A DNA stretch of 64,000 nucleotides from Macrostomum lignano (Eukaryota), in assembly GCA_002269645.1 (NCBI GenBank), contig NIVC01000217.1, positions 62,001-126,000 on the forward strand, given 5' to 3'. The notes under the pieces were generated by a model. It searched no databases. It had not been told where the DNA came from and saw only the letters and a list, made by a program, of their open reading frames with translations. The position numbers were made by a program, and so were the translations under genes. The stretch's first letter is position 1; each line of letters starts with the position of its first letter. Positions 3,059 to 43,983 of this stretch are shown here, piece after piece.

Positions 3059-4373
3059 CAAGGGATACTCTAAAAGTTTTGCAATTCAACTATTTAAAGT
3101 TAATTCTGCCAAACTTTTCTATTACAATCCTTCAAAGTAGGCTCCCCGGAACTGCAAACACTTGTGCACTCATCCGAGCCACTTGTTCATGAAGCCCTGG
3201 AAGGCTTCAATTGGGATGCCATCAATCGCCTCCTTTGCCGCCCGCTCCAGCTCCTTGTTGGACTGAAACCTGCACCCCCTAAGCGACTTTTTGATTTCTG
3301 GAAAGAGCCAGAAGTCACAGGGGGCAAGGTCTGGTGAGTAGGGTGGGTGTGGTAGCGTTGAAATGCCCTCTTGGTCCAGGAATGCTCGAGTTGCAGCAGC
3401 CGTGTAGGCGGGGGCATTGTCATGGTGAAGTTTCCACCCTCGCATTCCCGTCCTTGGCTCCCTCTAGGCCACGCTGTTGATCACGACAGGCAAGCACTCT
3501 TCAGTATACTATCGAGCAGTGACTGTAGCTTGACCCTCCAGCTTCACCATCGCCACCACGCCTTGTGAGTCGAAGAAGATGGCAAACATCCGCTTGCCCT
3601 GGGACCGAGACCGCCTTGCTTTCAGGGGTCATTGCCCACCTTCCGGTACCCACTCTGCACTGCTACACTTTGTCTCAACGTCAAAATGATACAGAAACAT
3701 CTCATCACCAGTGATGACTTTAGAGTGGCACTGATGGCTCCCGTGCTCATATCAATCGATGAGAAACTGACAGAACTCCATGCGGGCCTGTTTCTGAGCA
3801 TCTGTCAGGATTTGGGGTATCCATTGGGCACAAAGCTTCCTGACTCTCAGGTGATCGTGTAGAATCGTATCGACCGCTGCCAATCCAATGCCAACATTCA
3901 TAGCTAACATGTCCGTGGTGATTCGCAGATCCTGATGAATCAGCTCCTGCACTGCAGCGATGTTTTCCTCCGTCACTGCTGTCGGAGGTCTCCTGGGCCA
4001 GGGGTCGTCAGAAAAGCTGGTCCTGCTGGCCTGGAACTTGCGGTACCAGTGTGTAACTGTAGCATATGACGGCGCTTGAGCCTCCAATGTTGCTAGTAGC
4101 TCGGCATGAGTCTCAAGCACCGTGAGCTTTTGCTTGTGGCAGTACCAAATTAGTAGCCGATTTTGCTCACGAATCAATTCCATGGCTGCAGCTGTACAAG
4201 CTACAGTTAAGGAGTCTCTGATTTTGACTGGGGGCTGAGCAGGCATATATGTATGAATTCACTTGAAAATTGAGGTGGAGACTATGTACATGTTTATTGT
4301 ACAGAGAGTTGGTTTTGAAGATTGTGCAACTTGCACAAGTGGTTGAATTGCAAAACTTTTGGAGTATCCCTCG
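3059..4373 (-). mobile_element. mariner (DD34D) DNA transposon, full length (~1.3 kb), inactive
   Basis: TIRs of about 32 bp (caagggatactctaaaagttttgcaattcaac / gttgaattgcaaaacttttggagtatccctcg, 2 mismatches). TA TSD at 3057-3058 and 4374-4375. Confidence 0.93.
3170..4246 (-). pseudogene. mariner transposase pseudogene
   Basis: One reading frame contains WIPQILT (WVPHEL-like), ITGDE, HHDNAPAY and HPPYSPDLAPCD, with D-34-D spacing. It is broken by four in-frame stops (TGA, TGA, TAG, TAG). Confidence 0.92.
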
Positions 4374-6466
4374 TACTTAGGAATGTGTCATGTCTATGCA
4401 GGAATATATTTTAGCATATTTTTAATATGCATTATACCAAAGTTAAAGTTACAAATTGTGTGCTAGGGCCTATATTTGTTTTTTGACATATGCATAGCTA
4501 GAGCACCAATGCTTAGTAACTTTAGAAAATCCAAAAAAAATTGGATTAAATTAAAAATAAAAATAACAAATCAATGTTTGTAGCTTTTTTGGGCTTTTTA
4601 AGTAAAAAAATTGTTTTATTTTAGCTTATATTAAAATTTATCAAAAAAAATCAACTTAAACTTTATGATAATATGCTATTTTATATTTTAATAATTTGTT
4701 TAATTAACTAAGAAACTATTATCTAATAGACACATCAAATTATGCCCTGGAAAATGATCTAAAAGCATATTTCATGTAGACATATAGATTATACATTTTG
4801 GATGACCCATTATAAAGCTAAATATTGCTACTCAGCTTTAGCTAGGCACTACTATGCACTTTTAATTTTTTGATAAACATTTTTATTGTGTATAGTATGT
4901 GCCACTTCATGAACATTTTGTTTATGTATACTAGAATTTCCACCACACTTTCTTGAGTGGGACTGCTTGGACACTTGTCATTACTAAAATGCAATGCTTA
5001 TTACTATGGTCTTATGCCAATAATGACAATATTATCCACATAGCACCATGCCAATAATGCTCTGCTTATTAGTATAGCAACTAAATTATATATGTAGGAA
5101 TGGCCTGCTACTCTTAGCATATACCATTCTAATAACAACAATATTATCTATTTAGTGCTATACCAATAATGCTATGCTAATTTACATAGTAGCTTAATTA
5201 TTCACAGATAATAAAAGAACTAGATGGGGCTTTTCCATTACAGGAAAACACTAAGTTACAGGTCATCATATTGCAGGAGCATTTTCCCAAAAAATTGTGT
5301 GCTTCAGAAATAACGAAAAACCAAAAATTTGTAAAATAGCTAATTTGATTGCAAGCTTATTCAAAATGTGGTACAAATCCTCAAAATTGCTTATGGAATG
5401 CCACAAATCGATACAATGTCCAACCATGATTAATTTAGTTTGAAAATATGTAGTTGCGCTTTGTCATATATATACACTATTTATACTGTCCTGCTCCTAT
5501 AAGTTATGTTTAAGTTTAAGTAGCGATTTTTAACTGTGAACAAAACTACAACAGCTTAGAGGTGTATTTTTATTTTAACTTTTAAAAGATAGCATGTATA
5601 CAAAGTCCAAAATAATAAATAGTGATAAAGAAGTGATAAAAGTTAATTAAAAGTCTTTTTATTTTCAACAACCAACTCGGAAAAAAAATTTGAAGGGTTC
5701 AAACCGTTGAAAATTAGAACAGCTAGACTATTGGCAAACTTTGAAATGGAGAAAAATGGAGAAGTTCAAAATAGATTCAAAGAAAAATTTAACTTGCTGC
5801 AACTGCGTAAATACTAACTAATGCAATTTTAATGGCTGAGCTATAAAATGAAGAACTTACTATAAATACTACCCCTTGCGATTTGAATGCTGTAAAATGA
5901 AGGACTTCACCTATCAATCTGATGAATATGTAATATTTATATACGATAAAATGCTGACAGAAAAGAGATATTTGGCAAAAATGAACCAAACTAAAGCTTT
6001 AACCAGCTTTAAAATTTAGAACACAAGTCAATTTGGCTTCAAAGTGGTGTAGCAGCTAAGATAAAGAGAAAACATAGAACAGTTTCAATTGACCAGCATA
6101 TAAAAGTACTTTGCTGAAAAATGCAGAAATTCTGCAACAGACAGGGGTCGTAGAACGAATCGCACAATGTTAAACAATTGGTGGTAAATAAGTAGCTTAA
6201 GAAAAAGCAAACAGTTTCAAGGTATCGTATTCAAAGCCATTAAAGCATAGTAGCATGCCAAACAAAGTGCTAATAAAATGACCATAGAAAATCAGCACAA
6301 TAGTCTTAAAGCACACTGAATGCCCTAAATGTCATCCCAGCAATTTGAATATCTGAGCTGTAAAATGAAGGATTTGCTATAAATGCCAATACCAACCCTG
6401 CTATTTAGAATGCCTGCTGTAAAATGAAGAACAGAACCAACAATATCAAGGGCAATTTGTAGGCTT

Positions 6467-9400
6467 TCACTTTGACTGCCGACTGCCGCCGGCTGTTTCG
6501 GCCTGGCGTTTCTTCGCTGCAGCCGACTGTCGACTCTTCGCTGGATTCGCTTGATCGGCGGCTGTTTCAGCGGGACGTTCCTTCGCTGCAGCCGCCTGTC
6601 GACTCTTCGCTGGGTTTGCTTTCGCTTGATCGACGGCTGTTTCAGCCTTGCGTTTCTTTGCTGCAGCCGCCTGTCGAGTCTTCGCTGGGTTCGCTTTCGC
6701 TTGATCGACGGCTGTTTCAGCCTTGCGTTTCTTTGCTGCAGCCGCCTGTCGACTCTTCGCTGGGTTCGCTTTCGCTTGATCGATGGCTGTTTCAGCCTTG
6801 CGTTTCTTTGCTGCAGCCGCCTGTCGACTCTTCGCTGGATTCACCGTGTTTGACTTGTGAGATGCTGCCGCTGGACCTCGGACAAAAGCAAGGAATGCCT
6901 CCGGTCCAACGATGTCCGGTTGCTGCATGTTGGCCAGACCAGAAATGATGCCACCAATCGCAAATCGTGCAGCCATGCTCATTGACTTCATTGTAGCTTG
7001 GTACGACTGGCGTGCAACATTGGGTTTGTGGCACAGTCGGATCGATACTGCCTTTTGTTGATTTTCGTCTAGGTACATTGCGGAGTACGTTTCAATGAAT
7101 TTCCGATAGGCTGTATTAGTCACATGCTCGATTTTCGAATTCTTTGCTCGCTCCCTTGTCCATACCCTCGCAAAGCCACCCGTGCCAAGTGGGAAGAGCC
7201 TGTCAGTTGGTGAGGCCGTCTTTGCTCTCTCTTGAATGTAATTCGCGAGAATTTCGGCAACGCTGTCGACCGCAACTCTACAGGCGCCATACATGTTGGA
7301 CGTCTTGTGCTCTTTAACGAAAAATTCGCTCTTCTGATCAGTCAGCCACTCAAGGCCTTCCTCAATGGTTGCATTAGTCGGAATGTCCGGCCTACTGGCG
7401 TTGCCATTCGAGAAGCACATTGAAGTGGTGATGCCAACAATGACGTCGTTGGACAAAATGTTTGATTCTGCAGCTGATTCTGCTCTAGTAATTAAGGAAT
7501 GCACATGCGAGTGCAAACTTTCGACTTCTTCTGGCTTCAGTAATTCCTTATCGAGAACGTTCCGCAATCTGGCATCATTTGGCCGACGAACCTTAAGTCC
7601 ATACGCCTTGGTTAGGCGCTTTAGACGCTCTTCGAACTCCAGAAGGTAGCATTTCAGGCCTAGATTCCGTAGTTCGACAAAACGGCGTGCTCGGAAAAAC
7701 GAAACTAAATGCGTTAACGCGTTGATGCATGATCGATCGGCTGATTTATTTCGCTTCGAGTCCTCCTCAACGAACGCGCTAACTTTATCACGAAACTCTT
7801 CAGTCAAAATCGAAAGAAGGTCCGTCAGCCCACAAGCTTTAGCTAATCGAGACAGAGCATCAGTGTTCTTCCGAATCGACGACGCCTTAAGTCCGCCTCC
7901 TTCCCACTTTGGTAGCCACTTGGCCAAGTCTGAGAGCTCGACCTCCAGCAAAGTCGCCTCCTTTTTGGCATCAATGGACTTTTTAAGCGCATCAAATTTT
8001 TCCTGGGCTTTCTTGGCAGCAGCTTCTGCAGGCTTGTAGTAATGAAACCGCACACGATGGGCAGTCATTGAGCGCTTCTCAAACAGAACATCACAATCTG
8101 GGCACTTCACCTTTCTGGAAGAGTCATCTTCAACCTCTTGCTGATTAAATACTTTGATCTCTGCAACCAGATCGTCTATATTCTTCGAGCCAAGAATATC
8201 TTTGTGGCTTTCGCGTAGATGTTGACGGATCCGGGAATGGAAAATTCCATGTTGTTGTCCCTCGGATTCCGATGGCTTCTTGAACGGGCAAATATAATTC
8301 ACACCTCGCTGCTTCGATGAATTTTCCTTACCGGAAAAGGCTGCATTAGAAGAACCAGCATCAGCGGCATCGGCATCAAGATCAACAGCGGCATCGGCAT
8401 CAAGATCGACAACGGCAACATGACAACCAGCGGCGAGAATGGCATTTAAGTCTTCCTCGGAAATAGGGACCAGATGGTAATTGCCGTCCTGAAGAGTTCC
8501 ATTTAGATGTTCAGGCACAACGAACTCTTGCTGCTGCTGCTGCTCAGGTGGCAACGATGGTAGAGTTGGCGGGTTGCCAGAAACTGGGTCACTTGTCCTG
8601 CTGTCCGAGCCAACACTGGCAGGAGTTGCATTGTCCTTGGACATTTTCTTATGGCCTGCATCGAGGTTAGGATGAAGGTAAGATAAAATGTAATGAACAT
8701 GATAGTCAGTGACTGCTAGCTATGAAAATATTTTCTTAAATAATAAATTTACATTACAGGGTATGCTTATGAAGCAATAGGATAATATATAGGTAAAGTA
8801 ACCTTCCATCAGCCATTTCTGCAATTTAACAGCCAACTGTGATTTGAAGTATCAGATCTGCAATTTAATGTCCCCTCCCTGCTGTGATTTGAGTCCTACT
8901 TAATCAGTCAACCTGCAAATATACTTTGAATTACAAAAAATGTATTTACCTAGAGAAGCAGTCAATTGCTGCTGTGGCTGCTGCTGCTCAGGTGGCAACG
9001 ATGGTAGAGTTGGCGGGTTGCCAGAAACTGGGTCACTTGTCTTGCTGTCCGAGCCAACACTGGCAGGAGTTGCATTGTCCTTGGACATTTTCTTATGGCC
9101 TGCATCGAGGTTAGGATGAAGGTAAGATAAAATGTAATGAACATGATAGTCAGTGACTGCTAGCTATGAAAATATTTTCTTAAATAATAAATTTACATTA
9201 CAGGGTATGCTTATGAAGCAATAGGATAATATATAGGTAAAGTAACCTTCCATCAGCCATTTCTGCAATTTAACAGCCAACTGTGATTTGAAGTATCAGA
9301 TCTGCAATTTAATGTCCCCTCCCTGCTGTGATTTGAGTCCTACTTAATCAGTCAACCTGCAAATATACTTTGAATTACAAAAAATGTATTTACCTAGAGA

Positions 9401-11185
9401 AGCAGTCAATTGCTGCTGTGGCTGCTGCTGCTCAGGTGGCAACGATGGTAGAGTTGGCGGGTTGCCAGAAACTGGGTCACTTGTCCTGCTGTCCGAGCCA
9501 ACACTGGCAGGAGTTGCATTGTCCTTGGACATTTTCTTATGGCCTGCATCGAGGTTAGGATGAAGGTAAGATAAAATGTAATGAACATGATAGTCAGTGA
9601 CTGCTAGCTATGAAAATATTTTCTTAAATAATAAATTTACATTACAGGGTATGCTTATGAAGCAATAGGATAATATATAGGTAAAGTAACCTTCCATCAG
9701 CCATTTCTGCAATTTAACAGCCAACTGTGATTTGAAGTATCAGATCTGCAATTTAATGTCCCCTCCCTGCTGTGATTTGAGTCCTACTTAATCAGTCAAC
9801 CTGCAAATATACTTTGAATTACAAAAAATGTATTTACCTAGAGAAGCAGTCAATTGCTGCTGTGGCTGCTGCTGCTCAGGTGGCAACGATGGTAGAGTTG
9901 GCGGGTTGCCAGAAACTGGGTCACTTGTCCTGCTGTCCGAGCCAACACTGGCAGGAGTTGCATTGTCCTTGGACATTTTCTTATGGCCTGCATCGAGGTT
10001 AGGATGAAGGTAAGATAAAATGTAATGAACATGATAGTCAGTGACTGCTAGCTATGAAAATATTTTCTTAAATAATAAATTTACATTACAGGGTATGCTT
10101 ATGAAGCAATAGGATAATATATAGGTAAAGTAACCTTCCATCAGCCATTTCTGCAATTTAACAGCCAACTGTGATTTGAAGTATCAGATCTGCAATTTAA
10201 TGTCCCCTCCCTGCTGTGATTTGAGTCCTACTTAATCAGTCAACCTGCAAATATACTTTGAATTACAAAAAATGTATTTACCCGGAGAAGCAGTCAATTG
10301 CTGCTGTGGCTGCTGCTGCTCAGGTGGCAACGATGGTAGAGTTGGCGGGTTGCCAGAAACTGGGTCACTTGTCCTGCTGTCCGAGCCAACACTGGCAGGA
10401 GTTGCATTGTCCTTGGACATTTTCTTATGGCCTGCATCGAGGTTAGGATGAAGGTAAGATAAAATGTAATGAACATGATAGTCAGTGACTGCTAGCTATG
10501 AAAATATTTTCTTAAATAATAAATTTACATTACAGGGTATGCTTATGAAGCAATAGGATAATATATAGGTAAAGTAACCTTCCATCAGCCATTTCTGCAA
10601 TTTAACAGCCAACTGTGATTTGAAGTATCAGATCTGCAATTTAATGTCCCCTCCCTGCTGTGATTTGAGTCCTACTTAATCAGTCAACCTGCAAATATAC
10701 TTTGAATTACAAAAAATGTATTTACCCGGAGAAGCAGTCAATTGCTGCTGTGGCTGCTGCTGCTCAGGTGGCAACGATGGTAGAGTTGGCGGGTTGCCAG
10801 AAACTGGGTCACTTGTCCTGCTGTCCGAGCCAACACTGGCAGGAGTTGCATTGTCCTTGGACATTTTCTTATGGCCTGCATCGAGGTTAGGATGAAGGTA
10901 AGATAAAATGTAATGAACATGATAGTCAGTGACTGCTAGCTATGAAAATATTTTCTTAAATAATAAATTTACATTACAGGGTATGCTTATGAAGCAATAG
11001 GATAATATATAGGTAAAGTAACCTTCCATCAGCCATTTCTGCAATTTAACAGCCAACTGTGATTTGAAGTATCAGATCTGCAATTTAATGTCCCCTCCCT
11101 GCTGTGATTTGAGTCCTACTTAATCAGTCAACCTGCAAATATACTTTGAATTACAAAAAATGTATTTACCTGGAGAAGCAGTCGA

Positions 11186-11221
<36 letters not shown>

Positions 11222-11757
11222 AGATGGCAGCAATGTTGGGGTCAGTCGTCTAGAAGTAGGTGCCAAGATAGTAGAAGTAGTAGACAAGACCTTTCTAAAA
11301 TGTTGAAGTTATATAGGACATTTAAAATCTATTGACTTGCATTGCATAGCCATAGATATAGTGGTGCTTATCTATCTTAGTCACCTTATACAAGTTGCAT
11401 TTAGTAGAGATCAGTTTATGCATCATAAAGTCCAAAATGGCATTATACATTAGGTGCAATGATGCCATGTGACATAATTTGCAGTGAAAATCTCAAGCCT
11501 TAACTCATGCCTATGCCCAATTGAATGCTAAATTTCAGAATAATAAAATAGAAAGAGAATACTTACTTGCCAACACAACCAATCCATGACTTGCCATTTT
11601 CGTCATTGTACATGACAAATGCACCTTTCTTGATTTTCCTACTTTCATTTTCTGACCCTGGAATGATTTGCAAATCCTCTTTAAACACATAATGGCATTC
11701 ACCTTCAGTTTGGTCCTGCCAGTAAACTAAAACTCGTGTTTTATGGCGATGAGCCAT
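6467..11757 (-). CDS. multi-exon tyrosine-recombinase-like protein (~1084 aa): Tudor/SH3-like N-terminus, polyQ, 5x 50-aa repeat exons, 2 C2H2-like fingers, YR catalytic domain, basic C-terminal repeats
   Basis: Predicted exons: 11757-11567, 11294-11170, 10875-10726, 10431-10282, 9987-9838, 9543-9394, 9099-8950, 8655-6467. All are GT-AG and phase-compatible, totalling 3255 bp. The last exon has CPDC..H..FH fingers and the YR motifs NASRP (R), HKT (K), TNTAYRK (R), LCH (H) and RQSY (Y). Confidence 0.75.
6470..6850 (-). repeat. 75-bp coding tandem repeat (25 aa: ANPAKSRQAAAAKKRKAETAVDQAK) x~5
   Basis: Directly visible in the DNA and in the ORF translation. The last copies are degenerate. Confidence 0.9.
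8531..11200. repeat. 444-bp tandem array, ~6 near-identical units (150-bp exon + 294-bp intron)
   Basis: The MSKDNATP start recurs at 8644, 9088, 9532, 9976, 10420 and 10864, a period of 444. Units differ at only a few positions (ctagag/ccggag/ctggag). Confidence 0.97.
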
Positions 11758-12485
11758 TGTTTTATCCTATTAGGATCGAATTGCTTCACAATTAGGTACT
11801 AGCCTGTAGGCCTAGTGTTCATGTTCTAGATAAAATCTGCAAGTGAAAACTTGTCTACCAAATGGCAGCAAATAAGAATAAACGAAAGAAATTTTAATTT
11901 AAAAAATTTTAGGTCAGTCTTTTCTAGCTAATCTGATAGTTCTCATTAGAACAAATGTTGGATAAAGATTTTTAATTTAACTGATTGGTCTTCATCCAGA
12001 GAAAATGAACTTTTTCTTTAATATATAATATTCTTTTTTTCCAAAAGCTTATTCGGTCACACTGTTTGTATTTGTCGCTACCACTATTTAATTTTCTTAA
12101 TATCTAATTATCTACTTATTGTAGATAAGATTAATATATAATTGTAATTGATGTCATCGCTTTGCTTTATCTGGTTCTAACTGATTTGAAAAAAAAATTA
12201 AACGGTAATGAATTTATAAGGTTGTGGTTAAGATTAAAGAAAAGATTAAATGAGCAACCTGTCAGAACCATTTTAGTGCCTAAATATTAAGGCTTAATGC
12301 AGTTCGAAATCGAAATGAAACTTTTTTCTTTTTATGAAGAACTAGTACACACAGTTACGCACATAGGGTCAGTGGGCAGTGGGGCATACATTCTTGTAAT
12401 TTATATTAGTCTAGTCGAATATGCAGCTATATCTAAATTCACTGAATCCACTATAAATTCTAGTTGTCACTCTGTGGTATTAACT

Positions 12486-12741
12486 AAATTTGTATTGTGA
12501 TAGCTTATTTAATTCTATAGTTTTAGACTAAAATAATAAAACTATATTAAACTTTGAATATTACTTGAATATTAAATTTCAAGAACTATATTTAAAACTA
12601 ATATTAAACTTAAATTTTATATTACTTTGAATATTAAACTTTGAAACTATATTAAACTTTATACTTTGAATAATTTGGAAAGAATGTCTATAGTTTTAGA
12701 CTAAAACTATAGAATTAAATAAGCTATCACAATACAAATTT
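12486..12741. repeat. foldback/MITE-like structure with 41-bp inverted repeats
   Basis: aaatttgtattgtgatagcttatttaattctatagttttag (12486-12526) is the reverse complement of 12701-12741. The interior has aaactatattaaacttt direct subrepeats. Confidence 0.75.
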
Positions 12742-13918
12742 TGTTTGGATTTTATTGTTTTGATTAAGCAAACATGGAAGAAACCATTCTGCCAATTTGG
12801 TATATATATAACTGCAATTACTACTGCATATATTGCATTTCATTTTGTAAATTAAACTGATATAAAATCAAGTACAAGTTTCAGTTACCGGAATTTACCC
12901 AATTCCGGTAAATTAATGCCTTTCTGTACTTTGATGCCTGTAATCTGGTGCTCATCTTTAATTTGAAGACAGAAGCTAAAAATTCCTATATCTTTTGAAT
13001 AAAATGCAACTATGATCTTAAATTACAGTAGGTGATAGATCTATAGCAGTAGGCACGATCAAAGGGGTTTTCAAAAATCTGTAATTTGAAGCCTTTCTGT
13101 GATCTAATGTGCACCTGTAATTTTATGCTAAACTCCTGTAACCCTGCGCCAATCTGTAACGATTTGGAAAGTATGGGCCATTCAGGCATATATACTTAGT
13201 AAAACAGCTTTCTACTTTCAGTTCAAAGTTTAGAAGCCCAAGCTTGCAAGCATAAACAACTTGCTAATTGGTTAAGCAATAATGTACATTAGCCAGTCCA
13301 CTGAATGTACATGGCAGCTTTAGACTGGAATTCCGAGAAAGGCAATAAAAATTGGGGTAGGGCAGGTCAGGGGTTGAGTGGAAAAGGGCAGTTGGAGGTT
13401 TAAATGGGGGGTAAGAGCCAATAAATGAGCTTTGGCTTTAAAAAAAATCATTAAAATGCTTCCGCTTAACTTACTACTGAATTGAAAGTAGCTTACACGC
13501 AAATGTGCTGAGTGGCCCATCTGGTTATTCTAGTACCTGTGATTATATAGGAAGAGACCTACTATTTTTAGCATGTACCATGCCTAACTATTAAACACAT
13601 TTAAGTGTATATTATACTAATTATAATTTAGTTGCCATGCAAATAAGCAGAACATTAATGGCATGATGCTATGTGGATATTGTTATTATTATTAGCAGAA
13701 GACTATGGGAATAATTGTGCTGACTTAATAGAAAGATTTCTTGGTAATTAAGTAATGAAACAAATTTCTTTGCACGATTTGGCAACACTAGTGAAATATA
13801 TGGAAGCTCTATAATAGTAGTTATAAGCTTAGTAAGCTCAATAGCAAGAACCACCTTATTTTACCATTATATTAAAATATTTAAAACAAGTTTCATCATT
13901 TTATCATTCCTATACCAG

Positions 13919-14669
13919 TTGAAGTGCCGCGCAGCTTCTACCTGTTGGAAGAACTGGACGAAGGTCAGAAAGGCACTCAAGATGGCACAATAAGCTGGGG
14001 CCTTGAGAATGACAATGACCAGACTCTTACTAATTGGATTGGCATGATTCTGGGCCCACCAAAGACGCCATATGACAATCGAATGTACAATTTGCACATC
14101 ACTTGCGGTCCCAACTACCCTGAACAGGTGAGAGGCGCCTGTTTCTTTATTGGTGTACTTTATGGATTATAGCTCGGGCTGGTTTAAGTTTAGAAACTTA
14201 TGTTAATCGTTCCGGAATTTTTTAAGTTAGTTTTGAAGTAATTCAGGGTTCGAATATCAGTACTCAGATAATTCAGAATTCGAATATCAGTACTCAGGTC
14301 ATTCAGAATTCGAATATCAGTACTCAGGTCATTCAGAATTCGAATATCAGTACTCAGGTCATTCAGAGTTCGAATATCAGTATTTAGGTAGTTCAGAGTT
14401 CGAGAGAAAAGTGCGCCAAAATTCACATAGCCATATACCGTTCCCATCCAACCACCCCTGACCAGCCTCCAACCGTGCGCTTCATCAGTCGCATCAAGAT
14501 GAACGGTGTACACGAGACTACAGGGCTGGTGGACGGCAGGAAGCTGCCCAGTCTGGCTCAATGGCGCAGGGGCTACCACATCAAGACTGTGCTGCAAGAG
14601 CTGAGACGCCAGATGACCGCTAGAGAGAATGCCAAGCTGTCCCAGCCGCCCGAAGGCTCTTCGTTCTAA
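13919..14669 (+). CDS. UBE2V: ubiquitin-conjugating enzyme E2 variant (UEV1/Mms2); first coding exon not located
   Basis: Exons 13919-14127 and 14466-14669 (GT-AG) give [60 protein letters not shown]|PPTVRF...[10 protein letters not shown], the hallmark UEV sequence. Confidence 0.93.
14230..14405. repeat. 30-bp intronic minisatellite
   Basis: ttcagaattcgaatatcagtactcaggtca x~5.5 inside the UBE2V intron. Confidence 0.9.
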
Positions 14670-27569: not shown

Positions 27570-35614
<8,045 letters not shown>

Positions 35615-39362: not shown

Positions 39363-40900
39363 ATGTCTAGAGGTCAAATCTCAGATAGAGAAAAGCGGAC
39401 GGCTGCAGAGATGGAGGCACCGCTCATTAATTGGAAGCATTTGCCCTGCAGTGAGCTGGGCAACGTGACTAAGGACAAATTGAATTTTGTTTCGGAGGCT
39501 TCTTACAATGACAGAAGGGACAATGAGTTCGCTAGATTTCTCGAATTCATTCAAAAGGAGCCCGAGCCCAATGAGCATCTGCCGCTCCTGCAGGAAGGTG
39601 GCGTAGATATCAGCGCCATGGACATCGCCGAGATTGACAGCCTACCAGCAGACAGCAGGAAGCAGATGATCAGCCATGGACAGCGGTTCAAGACATTCCT
39701 CACAGAGGAAAATCTTCAGCGCAATTTACAAACCATTCCGAATTCGGTGCTCAACCAATACATTCGCTACTTCTACTTTAAACTGAAGAAGATTGACGGC
39801 AAACCTTACTTGCCCGCATCGCTGGTGTGCATCAGGGCTGGACTGCAGCACTATTTGTGGATGATTGAGAAGCTAACCGTTGACATCATCAATGGAGAAG
39901 ACTTTTCTTCTGCAAATAGCATGCTGCGTGTGAAGGTTCGAGACTTTCACCAGAGTGGTGGGAGGACGCAGCAGTTTGAGCCAATCGAGGAGGGGGACAT
40001 GAGGAAGCTGATGATCTACTTCCAAGGCAGCACAGCTGAAGTTGAGCAGGACAAATTCTTATTCTACATCATATACAGCTTTGGCGAGCGAGGCCAGGAG
40101 CACCTCAAGTTCTTGAAGGATAGAAGCTCACTTCAATTGCACGTCGACTCTGATGGAAAGCCGTTCTACTGTCTGCCTCCGTTGCCCTCGAAAAATAAGT
40201 CAGCAGATCCAGAGAAGGCCAAGAAGCAGCCGGACAACAAGCAGGCCAGAATTTACGACGTGGAAAAGGTGGAGAAATACCTCAAGCTGCTTCCAGTTAC
40301 AACGAAAGACAACAATCTGTTTCCTCGTCCTTTGGCCAGCTGCAACGATGGAGGCCCTGTTTTCTCCTCGAAGCAGAACCGTGGAGAGAATTATCTGAGT
40401 GGCTTCATGAGAAAATTGAGTATGAAGGCAGGACTTGCGAAGACCTACACAAATCATTGCATTCGGTAAGACTGATAAATTAATAATAGTAACTTTAATT
40501 ATGTTATGATACATGTTATGTTACCAATTACTCATGAATCCAACTATATAAATTTGCACTCTAAAACAGGGTCACGCGAATATGCGATCTCGAGGCGGCA
40601 GGGCACAGCATGAGCAATATAATGAGCATTACTGGACAGCTGAGCGAGCGAACGACTAGGAGGTACCTAGCCAAGCGTCGCAACCGGTCGCTTCAAAAGA
40701 CGAGTGAGTCTGTTCAGGTGGCATTGAATCGTCATGATCTAGAGCAAGAAGCTGGGCCACCCGAACATGCTGATGCTGTTGAGATCGTCGGTGAGACTGC
40801 AGTATCGACGGAGGTTAGTGTTAGCACTGAAGCTGCCTATTCTGTTGGTACGAAGTTTGCCTTCAACAATTGCACCTTTCACGGATGTTCCTTTAATTAG
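39363..40900 (+). CDS. CryptonA-like (DUF3504-type) tyrosine recombinase, 2 exons
   Basis: Exons 39363-40465 and 40570-40900 (GT-AG, phase 2). Motifs: KIDGKPYLPASLVCIRAGLQHYL, FGERGQE (R), KNK, YTNHCIR|VT (HxxR), ITGQLSERTTRRY (Y), and a C-terminal FNNCTF tail. Confidence 0.88.
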
Positions 40901-42661: not shown

Positions 42662-43983
42662 CTGATTGGTAAAAATCTGGACATGGTTAGTTTTTGCCAT
42701 AGACAAAATTTAACGAGGCAAATTTATTGAGCTGATGCTTTTGAGCAATACTGGGGGTCTTCCTCACAACTTAAGTTGTTTTTTTCACTTGTTTGCCCCG
42801 TCACGTCTGAGATGCAGTCTCTAAATGAAGAGCAGCGGCGTAAACTGGTTGTACAATATAAAATTGAGCACCCTGGGCTGAGCAACAATGCAATCGCAAA
42901 ATATTTTGCTGAGCTTGGTGTCCCAAGATCAACCATTTATGGAATTCTGGATCGCTACTCAGCAACTGGAGAAGATTCTGTGCTACGGAAGGAGGGGTCA
43001 GGACGACCAGCTACCAAGGTCACTGCCACTTTGATGGAGAAGATGTCAAATGATGCCAGGACGGGTCTGTCCCAGCGCGAAATTGCACGCAAATATGACA
43101 TCAGCCAGCCGTACGTCAACGAGATTCTCAAGAAGCAGGGACTAAGTGCATACAAGAAAGAAAAAGTGCCATTTGTGTCGTTTGAGCAGAAAGAGCGCCA
43201 GCGTGTGAGGATTAACAGGCTCTACCGTGCTGTGCTGGCAGGAGATGACGGCGGACTGGACATTGTCATGGACGATGAATCGTACTTCTCTCTGTCATCC
43301 AATGTCATCCCTGGTAACAGGTTCTATTATGCAACAGCTCGAGGTGATGCACCTGATGAGGTTAGGTGTTCACCCAGCAAGAAATTTGAGGCCAAAGTCT
43401 TGGTCTGGCTGGCCATCAGCAAGAAGGGCATGTCCAAGGTCTTCTTCTGCCACGGCAGCTCAATGAACAAAGAGATCTACATAAGAGAGTGCATTCACAA
43501 GCGTCTATTGCCATTTATTAAGGAACAGCATGCTGACGGCAACTACCTGTTCTGGCCTGACCTGGCGAGCTGTCACTATGCTCGTGACGTCATTGACACA
43601 TTTGAAGAGGAAGGTGTCAATTTTGTCAGCAAGGAGCTCAATCCTCCCAATGTACCACAGCTGCCACCAATTGAGAACTTCTGGGGGATGTTGAAGCAAA
43701 AGGTTTACCATCACAATTGGACGACGGACAGTCTGGAACAGCTGGAAAATCGCATTCGCTACTGCCTCCGCCAGGTGGATCTGCACTGTGTACAGGAGAT
43801 GATGACCAATGTCAAGTCCGGGATTCGCCGAGCTCGGGCTAATGGTGTCGGAGCCGTTTGGCAATGAGCCAGACAATCCCTTATATATTGAACTTAATCC
43901 AAGTTAAAAGGCATGTGTTCAATTTGTTTATTGTTGTCTTGCTAAAACAAATAAAAATGTCCAGATTTTTACCAATCACCCAG
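42662..43983 (+). mobile_element. Tc1/mariner DD37E (TRT/ITmD37E-type) transposon
   Basis: TIR tgattggtaaaaatctggacat / atgtccagatttttaccaatca. TA flanks at 42660-61 and 43984-85. The left terminus lacks 4 bp relative to the right. Confidence 0.9.
42812..43867 (+). CDS. DD37E transposase, uninterrupted ORF
   Basis: N-terminal HTH pair, VMDDESYF, FWPDLASCH and PNVPQLPPIE. 37 residues lie between the second D and the E. Confidence 0.92.
   Translation: MQSLNEEQRRKLVVQYKIEHPGLSNNAIAKYFAELGVPRSTIYGILDRYSATGEDSVLRKEGSGRPATKVTATLMEKMSNDARTGLSQREIARKYDISQPYVNEILKKQGLSAYKKEKVPFVSFEQKERQRVRINRLYRAVLAGDDGGLDIVMDDESYFSLSSNVIPGNRFYYATARGDAPDEVRCSPSKKFEAKVLVWLAISKKGMSKVFFCHGSSMNKEIYIRECIHKRLLPFIKEQHADGNYLFWPDLASCHYARDVIDTFEEEGVNFVSKELNPPNVPQLPPIENFWGMLKQKVYHHNWTTDSLEQLENRIRYCLRQVDLHCVQEMMTNVKSGIRRARANGVGAVWQ

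Follow-up and report, generated by a model that had tools for sequence, protein, structure and literature searches.

Gene structure of the locus

The window analysed here, a 64,000-nt stretch of the Macrostomum lignano genome, contains a minus-strand open reading frame (ORF) at 6467-8644 that encodes 725 amino acids counted from its first ATG, with the stop codon lying within the 6467 end. We found this ORF to be the last exon of a multi-exon gene, the only gene of a repeated 8-kb unit, and the exon probably belongs to the transposase gene of an autonomous Crypton-like tyrosine recombinase (YR) DNA transposon. An ORF of 725 codons in DNA of 47% GC is well outside chance expectation. Position 8655 is a splice acceptor (tgcag/GCCATAAG) from which the exon extends over 729 codons, and the exon was intact in all three genomic copies of the unit. 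A first-pass annotation, made from the sequence alone, had described a 729-codon uninterrupted exon; it is indeed intact but does not stand alone, being the last of several. The ORF is annotated in GenBank as hypothetical protein BOX15_Mlig028483g1, at a locus (L009) that is the window's own (GCA_002269645.1, NIVC01000217.1; 100% identity over 20.9 kb).

The annotated proteins have a longer N-terminus than the ORF, and the extra residues were mapped by tblastn upstream of the terminal exon in the window (Table 1). Exon 1, whose ATG is preceded by in-frame stops, had no recognisable domain and no Pfam match, and the 3' end of exon 2 was already inside an array of tandem 444-bp units. Each unit comprises a 150-nt in-frame exon (50 aa, GHKKMSKDNATPASV...) and a 294-nt intron, and the six units of the window copy account for five 150-nt exons with their introns plus the start of the terminal exon. 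Every 150-nt exon contains its own methionine (MSKDN...). The number of units was 6 in the window copy, 7 in the copy at locus L001 and 5 in that at locus L010. In the RNA-seq-based model P0021 three units are spliced in frame, and the annotated transcripts overall splice one to three units. The GenBank models of M. lignano derive from a genome-guided transcriptome from which transcripts overlapping repeat annotations were removed (PMC5730564); the gene is therefore transcribed, and it was not recognised as a repeat by the 2017 repeat library.

The array represents an unusual exon-level amplification of the N-terminus of a transposase in which each unit carries its own ATG, and its 5, 6 or 7 units in three copies make it an unusual case of fast modular evolution of this part of the protein.

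Table 1. Features of the unit and its gene, in window coordinates (residues are numbered from the first ATG of the 725-aa ORF).
Feature	Position	Strand	Description and basis
ATGG outside left end	5224-5227	.	Half of the 4-bp direct repeat; putative crossover core from the target
Whole mobile unit	5228-13176	- (gene strand)	7,949 bp in the window copy; single gene
Left terminal region	5228-5262	+	GGCTTTTCCATTACAGG...GTTACAGG; arm CTTTTCCA and two TTACAGG motifs
Terminal exon	6467-8655	-	Zinc fingers, core-binding-like helices, catalytic domain, basic C-terminal repeats
Basic C-terminal repeats	6546-6842	-	Four 75-bp repeats, 25-aa unit NPAKSRQAAAAKKRKAETAVDQAKA; TRF
Catalytic domain	6929-7450	-	About residues 399-572; pLDDT 92-98, fold matches, conservation
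Candidate active-site codons	Y548 7001-7003; H539 7028-7030; R514 7103-7105; K447 7304-7306; R418 7391-7393	-	
T511	7112-7114	-	Position where YRs usually carry His-II (HxxR); T in 11/15
Core-binding-like domain, all-helical	7664-7951	-	About residues 232-327; AlphaFold helices, pLDDT about 90
C2H2 zinc finger	8042-8107	-	Residues 180-201: C181-x2-C184-x11-H196-x4-H201; conserved CxxC...HxxxxH
CHHC-like zinc knuckle	8204-8296	-	Residues 117-147: C119, H132, H142, H147; family-conserved
Tandem array	8533-11208	-	Six 444-bp units, 99% identity; TRF, splice sites
Internal 150-nt exons	10875-10726, 10431-10282, 9987-9838, 9543-9394, 9099-8950	-	Sequence and splice sites
Exon 2	11170-11294	-	KVLSTTSTIL...poly-Q...TASPG; tblastn of annotated N-terminus
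Exon 1	11567-11757	-	ATG at 11757; MAHRHKTRVLVYW...GCVGK; tblastn of annotated N-terminus; GTAAGT donor
Right terminal region	12937-13172	+	Five CTGTAA/CCTGTAA motifs (inverted relative to left end) and arm TTGGAAAG
ATGG at right terminus	13173-13176	.	Other half of the 4-bp direct repeat

Copies of the mobile unit

The unit was also observed at L001 (8,423 bp; gene g3) and L010 (7,504 bp; gene g2), giving at least three near-identical copies. Outside the tandem array these share 99.5-99.9% identity and the same first and last bases, and the two further loci align to the window solely across 5228-13176; their flanks, compared over 4-10 kb per side in all pairs of the three loci, gave no match at E 1e-5. 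Non-coding stretches of approximately 1.2-1.4 kb flanking the gene on either side were conserved as strongly as the coding sequence, and the count of 444-bp units is the chief difference among the copies. The window copy and the L010 copy are intronic, in a UEV/UQ_con gene and a TRAM_LAG1_CLN8 gene, respectively, and the L001 copy lies near a Miff-domain gene.

No other ORF longer than 80 aa was found in the unit except those overlapping the gene, and the unit had no match to a reverse transcriptase (RT), DDE transposase or capsid protein. The earlier statement that RT, capsid and DUF3504 features are missing nearby is thus correct inside the 8-kb unit, where the ORF is the only long one. Long terminal repeats (LTRs), split direct repeats and an internal complementary region were also absent from the unit. 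Introns are kept in every copy and RT is lacking, which speaks for DNA-based movement. The near-identity of the copies implies that the element, apparently autonomous, moved recently, and it may still be active.

An imperfect palindrome with arms of about 130 bp (76% identity) was observed at 12482-12745 in the upstream non-coding part of the unit and is kept in both L001 and L010. It is possibly a promoter or binding region.

Ends of the element and a second family

All copies start with GGCTTTTCCATTACAGG, and each insertion was bracketed by ATGG, in one case with a 2-bp overlap. The left junction reads ...ATGG/GGCTTTTCC in the window and L010, and ...ccAT/GGCTTTTCC in L001, with ATGG overlapping the first GG. 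At the right, all three junctions read ...GGAAAG(T/G)ATGG/flank, so that the element ends in TTGGAAAG(T/G)ATGG. Joined with one ATGG, the two ends would read TTGGAAAG-TATGGGG-CTTTTCCA, with a 7-bp spacer between imperfect inverted arms. Two TTACAG(G) motifs were observed at the left end, and five in inverted orientation in the final 240 bp on the right.

The same design was observed in a paralog (P0007/P0020) that is 26% identical in protein sequence and lies in a unit of 9.4-10.5 kb, present in two copies (L003, L011) with unrelated flanks. This unit starts with CCCCTATAGGCACGTTTATGAC and ends with GTCATAAACGTGCCCC, which include a perfect 14-bp terminal inverted repeat (TIR; GGCACGTTTATGAC), and CCCC is present at both ends, with no duplication in the flanks. 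Joining its ends with one CCCC would give 14 bp - CCTATA - 14 bp. Classical YR core sites consist of "two inverted repeats of 11-13 bp separated by 6-8 bp" (PMC3212892), and by this analogy the joined paralog ends would have the textbook layout. The 4-bp repeat was fixed within each family (ATGG in 3/3 copies, CCCC in 2/2) and different between the two, as expected of a recombination core that co-evolves with its element and not of a staggered-cut target-site duplication (TSD). The paralog family is an independent and cleaner replicate of the design.

These copies bear on the choice, left open by the first-pass annotation, between a transposon and a domesticated recombinase. A host gene derived from a recombinase, multiplied through the recent polyploidy of M. 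lignano, assembly redundancy or segmental duplication and not by transposition, would account for the introns, for the annotation as an ordinary transcribed gene that escaped repeat masking, and for the low copy number. Duplicates due to ploidy or assembly would, however, share flanks, and none matched in any pair; the nearly identical unit instead has the same first and last nucleotide in three loci, at least two of them in introns of unrelated genes and all bracketed by ATGG. The non-coding sides are as conserved as the coding part, and the 26%-identical second family repeats the pattern with its 14-bp TIR. We consider domestication very unlikely on this evidence, which speaks for a transposon with exact common ends.

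A few further observations concern the flanks. Positions 16904-16925 of L001, in the left flank of that copy, read CATTACAGTGTTTTCCAT and include exact CATTACAG and TTTTCCAT, both also present in the left end of the element, and AGTGTTTTCC in the same flank is the reverse complement of element bases 15-24. The right flank in the window (GCCATTCAGG) resembles CCATTACAGG. The element-like words in the L001 flank could reflect a pseudo-site preference or a remnant of an earlier event. A 100-bp inverted pair just beyond both ends of the window copy (4998-5097 and 13617-13714; 83% identity) was considered as TIRs and rejected, as it lies outside the unit common to the three copies and was not observed in the flanks of the L001 and L010 copies. 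The pair may instead be a foldback element of about 770 bp, resembling a miniature inverted-repeat transposable element, that was used as an insertion target.

Predicted fold and candidate active site

None of the 18 family members matched PF00589 (Phage_integrase) or a related Pfam model even at E <= 1, and the fold was examined through structure prediction. An AlphaFold model from the single sequence was unusable (pLDDT 38), and the model built on an 18-row alignment reached a mean pLDDT of 85.4 (92-98 for most of the C-terminal half). It contains two beta-beta-alpha fingers, an all-helical region and a catalytic-type domain with a beta-hairpin. A match to the YR fold had been set beforehand as a test of the recombinase proposal. 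The best Foldseek match in the PDB was archaeal XerA (5hxy_B, E 5.5e-4, prob 1.00), the sole match below E 1e-3, followed by IntI (2a3v), Cre (4crx, 2hof, 1ma7) and the smallpox and bacterial type IB topoisomerases (topo IB); non-YR proteins had prob <= 0.1. Against BFVD nearly all of the best 25 matches (prob 0.8-1.0) were integrases, proteins with a Tyr recombinase domain, VLF-1, or giant-virus proteins sharing the fold. The YR matches aligned over 350-380 columns and both domains, whereas topo IB aligned over about 230 (229-236) and the catalytic domain only.

The ordered motif set reported earlier was present in full: NASRP/GNASR (R418), KEHKT (K447), TNTAYRK (R514) and LCHKPNVARQSY (H539 and Y548; CHKPNVARQSY). 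Among the sequences covering each position, conservation was 13/14 for R418 (the exception being one fragment with Q), 14/14 for K447, 15/15 for R514, and 10/10 for both H539 and Y548. The spacings between these residues are 29/67/25/9 in the family protein, compared with 28/91/23/9 in Cre (R173, K201, R292, W315, Y324) and 24/75/23/9 in XerD (R148, K172, R247, H270, Y279), the residue numbers being the established ones; the Cre and XerD sequences used were matched against the PDB. A low-stringency hhalign comparison of the catalytic halves with XerD was non-significant (E 0.19) and collinear over 157 columns, pairing in the same order K447 with K172, T511 with H244, R514 with R247, H539 with H270 and Y548 with Y279, which places four of the five candidate residues in register; in global mode hhalign was uninformative. 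The pentad is conserved down to 24% identity, from which retained chemistry can be argued, as the first-pass annotation had proposed for the catalytic residues. The predicted structure and the pentad together point to a very divergent YR fused to zinc fingers, which would presumably be catalytic.

Of the two C2H2-like fingers called earlier the second is a C2H2 finger, with weak matches to C2H2 fingers in the PDB, and the first is a CHHC-like knuckle. The ligand spacing of the knuckle is C119...H132-x9-H142-x4-H147 with a first loop of 12 residues in the window copy, its last ligand is a His at x4 in most family members, and it weakly matched zf-U11-48K (PF05253; best E 6.9e-5, 2/18 members) and GTSF1. 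AlphaFold modelled each of the two as a beta-beta-alpha unit. Profile matches of the core-binding region to the XerD/Cre N-terminal domain (E 0.063) and Phage_int_SAM_1 (E 0.62) were marginal. The basic tail of 25-aa repeats is a possible nuclear localisation signal or disordered tail.

Tandem peptide repeats form the C-terminus of all full-length relatives and have no sequence in common (AAAAKKRKAETA..., QQAKKAKKRGPGG..., DKQDSSV...); they were observed at 6546-6842 in the window, at the C-terminus of P0007 and at about 3500-3700 of L006. This suggests a recurrent, lineage-specific evolution of a disordered basic tail.

A mobile unit need not be moved by its own product. The YR-fold protein might be a DNA-binding or regulatory factor, or a topo IB-like cargo, in a unit mobilised in trans, for example by a DDE transposase that leaves a 4-bp TSD. 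Topo IB is among the fold matches (3igc_A, prob 0.91; 3m4a_A, 0.72), His-II is replaced by Thr, Tc1/mariner-like DDE_3 transposases are present in the genome (window 42776-43867), and the clean 14-bp TIRs and 4-bp repeat of the paralog family superficially resemble a TIR/TSD transposon. A repeat that is fixed per family is, however, unusual for a staggered-cut duplication, and the five catalytic residues are conserved among distant relatives. The YR matches span both domains and those of topo IB the catalytic one only, the N-terminal domain is helical and weakly SAM-like, and no other protein of more than 80 aa is encoded in the unit apart from overlaps with the gene. Mobilisation in trans is unlikely in our assessment, and the gene product remains the favoured transposase.

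Relatives in sequence databases

Relatives came to light only when 1.84 billion representative proteins were scanned exhaustively with HMMER; three word-indexed homologue searches returned only the query protein. The scan yielded just 19 relatives, all unannotated, including four that matched strongly over the full length (E 1e-70 to 1e-35, 32-42% identity) and lie on short environmental contigs from ENA/Logan, the 26%-identical M. lignano paralog described above, and fragments. The samples behind the environmental relatives include SRR25569785, ERZ23491819 and Ga0193947. The 4.8-kb sequence of one environmental relative was shared by four metagenome samples (L005-L008; 99.5-99.98% identity) and contains a eukaryotic gene with short introns, the same domain order and a DKQDSSV tandem-repeat tail. 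A scan of JGI metagenomes with the trimmed alignment added one locus. The family alignment contains as conserved blocks the C...H-x9-H-x4-H knuckle, the CxxC...H-x4-H finger and W/F-x-GG(G/K), followed by GNAxR(P)D...NAT..E(F)..W, HKT...YG, GFS..W, T-x-(Y/F)-R...ET and RLxH...VAxQSY.

A direct repeat of about 190 bp (85% identity) was observed near both ends of the L005 contig, at 257-443 and 4084-4281, and might mark the boundaries of that element.

Given the BFVD matches, which include AaV, TetV-1, Harvfovirus, PoV, Musca hytrosavirus and nudivirus/baculovirus VLF-1, we also considered an origin of the ORF in a larger integrated element, virus-like or cargo-bearing (giant-virus, nudivirus/hytrosavirus-like or Polinton-like), whose integrase module it would be, or in a DIRS/Ngaro-type YR retroelement that decayed and lost its RT. 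Conservation among the copies ends sharply at 5228 and 13176 with one gene in 8 kb, capsid, polymerase and RT matches were absent from the unit, and none of the IMG/VR viral contigs, searched with the trimmed alignment, encodes a relative. A retroelement would moreover lose spliceosomal introns, which all copies have, and the unit has no LTRs, split direct repeats or internal complementary region. Both variants appear extremely improbable.

Comparison with known systems

As a mechanistic class, the Crypton DNA transposons (Goodwin 2003) are among the systems closest to the element. Cryptons are defined as DNA transposons that encode a YR alone and have neither TIRs nor long direct repeats (Kojima & Jurka 2011; PMC3212892), a definition repeated in a 2026 paper (PMC13465315). 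Their 4- or 6-bp terminal direct repeats are thought to be recombination substrates, and they move via an extrachromosomal circle; most CryptonS elements have TATGG termini, animal CryptonA and CryptonI elements have neither an accessory domain nor terminal repeats, and the four Crypton groups may be of independent origin (PMC3212892). The element described here is likewise YR-only, without RT, LTRs or long TIRs, has an intron-containing gene and a low copy number, and carries 4-bp terminal direct repeats of fixed sequence that resemble recombination cores more than TSDs. Its ATGG terminus echoes the TATGG of CryptonS, and the circle-and-integrate mechanism that we propose would be the same. 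In contrast, its YR has no detectable sequence similarity to the described groups, DUF3504 or PF00589, and has Thr in place of His-II. It also differs from CryptonF, which has a C-terminal GCR1_C domain, in bearing CHHC-like and C2H2 fingers at the N-terminus, and from animal Cryptons in having direct repeats and short inverted arms (14 bp and perfect in the paralog).

No family member matched DUF3504 (PF12012), and hhalign against the Crypton-like ORF of the window gave prob 0.1, with Repbase outside this comparison. The first-pass annotation had called the enzyme non-Crypton and distinct from the one at 39363. The distinction from the latter agrees with the lack of profile similarity, and placement inside a described Crypton clade found no support in comparisons with annotated YRs, DUF3504, Phage_integrase models or the Crypton-like ORF. 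The term non-Crypton is thus apt phylogenetically and misleading operationally: with a YR as its only enzyme, repeated copies with defined ends and 4-bp terminal repeats, the element qualifies as a Crypton by the working definition (PMC3212892), and by sequence similarity it cannot be placed in any described Crypton group. It thus looks like a deeply divergent and hitherto unnoticed branch of these rare cut-and-paste elements.

Structures of XerA (5hxy), XerD (1a0p), IntI (2a3v) and Cre were the best matches over the helical core-binding and catalytic domains. The R...K...R...H...Y order and spacing are shared with Xer and phage integrases, as would be a core site of inverted arms and a 6-7-bp spacer, but structure-based identity is just 8-11%, the protein has finger and repeat extensions and long extra inter-domain helices, and its gene is eukaryotic, has introns and lies within a transposon. 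Starships, with their Captain recombinases, and DIRS/Ngaro/VIPER elements are also eukaryotic and YR-mobilised, and Starships likewise pass through a circular intermediate and generate short direct repeats. Unlike a Starship, the element lacks a DUF3435 match and cargo and measures 8 kb, not tens to hundreds of kb; unlike DIRS/Ngaro/VIPER, it lacks RT/RNase H and split direct repeats and retains introns. From type IB topoisomerase proper it differs in its helical, weakly SAM-like N-terminal domain and in the location of its gene in a mobile unit. The first finger resembles the CHHC fingers of U11-48K, TRM13 and GTSF1 (PF05253) in its C-x5(12)-H-x9-H-x3/4-(C/H) ligands and weak hidden Markov model (HMM) matches, but its last ligand is His (x4) in most family members and not Cys (x3). 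Known CHHC fingers bind RNA, and this one sits in a DNA recombinase.

A literature search returned no link between M. lignano and Cryptons and no description of this architecture; Repbase and Dfam were not covered, and prior curation there is possible. The N-terminal CHHC-like and C2H2 fingers, the short inverted arms and the variable peptide repeats at both ends of the protein appear to be new relative to the papers searched. More tentatively, the element might be the first known representative of an as yet undescribed superfamily among eukaryotic YR DNA transposons, with a CHHC, C2H2, core-binding and catalytic architecture and a T-x-x-R motif, which arose independently of CryptonA/I/F/S, Starships and DIRS-like elements and still transposes at an ATGG core, a proposal that we regard as possible rather than probable.

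Several observations weigh against a Crypton-like, YR-driven transposon. Searches of Pfam, PHROGs, NCBIfam and the PDB (phmmer/hmmsearch) found no recombinase match at the sequence level, and the YR assignment draws on a structure predicted from a shallow, 18-row alignment. TM-scores were modest (0.26-0.47), which is expected because the query has extra fingers and a two-domain clamp of variable domain orientation. Canonical His-II is replaced by Thr511; this position is also variable in topo IB, where it is Lys. In the HMM-HMM alignment with XerD, R418 was out of register by about 10 residues owing to an insertion, and hhalign against Cre alone, the Crypton-like ORF of the window and a 5-sequence YR profile gave marginal core-binding-domain alignments only. 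At the DNA level, the left junction of L001 lacks two bases of the expected ATGG-GG, the terminal inverted symmetry is short and imperfect, and the modest enrichment of subterminal motifs was reached by 27 of 1000 internal controls and carries little weight. Three copies of this element were examined, and the locus sequences contained no empty sites, head-to-tail junctions, circle junctions or solo ends. The Mlig_3_7 assembly is also redundant (PMC5730564), which does not explain the copies because their internal boundaries are identical and their flanks unrelated.

Proposed mechanism and implications

In the model that we propose, the gene product would consist, in order, of an N-terminal region with variable 50-aa repeats, the CHHC-like knuckle, the C2H2 finger, the core-binding domain, the YR catalytic domain with Y548 as the putative nucleophile, and the basic tail. 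Recombinase subunits would bind the short inverted arms of the ends (TTGGAAAG and CTTTTCCA), perhaps aided by the subterminal TTACAGG motifs and the zinc fingers. Recombination across the 4-bp ATGG repeats, the presumed crossover position, would excise a circle with an arm-TATGGGG-arm junction, predicted to read ...TTGGAAAGTATGG(GG)CTTTTCCATTACAGG... This circular intermediate would integrate by conservative site-specific recombination at genomic ATGG sites, leaving ATGG on either side without a true target-site duplication.

YR-mobilised DNA transposons are, to our knowledge, the least understood class of eukaryotic transposons, and we know of no animal Crypton whose termini or mechanism have been established. 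In the present element the termini are exact, and the fixed 4-bp core and inverted arms combine with them to predict a YR core site of the classical kind; two divergent sister families replicate the design, and host-gene introns are the landing sites. The exact ends, replicate family, recent copies, annotated transcript and microinjection-amenable animal make the circle-and-integrate model directly testable. If the element does represent an undescribed and still active superfamily, the mechanism of an animal YR transposon could for the first time be put to a direct in vivo test, in the transgenesis-ready M. lignano. Divergent YR families that escape Pfam-type annotation exist in animal genomes, labelled as ordinary "hypothetical" genes, and genome engineers might take an interest in a eukaryotic site-specific integrase that is compact and has zinc fingers built in.

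Neighbouring features of the window

The window copy lies antisense in the 17-kb first intron of the UEV/MMS2-like gene, which encodes a protein of 142 aa; exons 2 and 3 were observed at 13919-14127 and 14466-14669 (+), and exon 1 lies approximately 3.1 kb before the start of the window. The 368-aa ORF at 39363-40469 (+), earlier called CryptonA-type, had a weak QRICH1-domain match (E 0.0014) and no sequence match in the PDB. A 363-aa ORF at 42776-43867 (+) contains HTH_23/HTH_29 and DDE_3 domains and is a Tc1/mariner-type transposase. Three consecutive long ORFs (1388, 305 and 431 aa) were observed at 28264-34717 (-), the last of which matches AAA_22/AAA_16/nSTAND1/NACHT-type NTPases, and this region may represent a large STAND NTPase gene or element.

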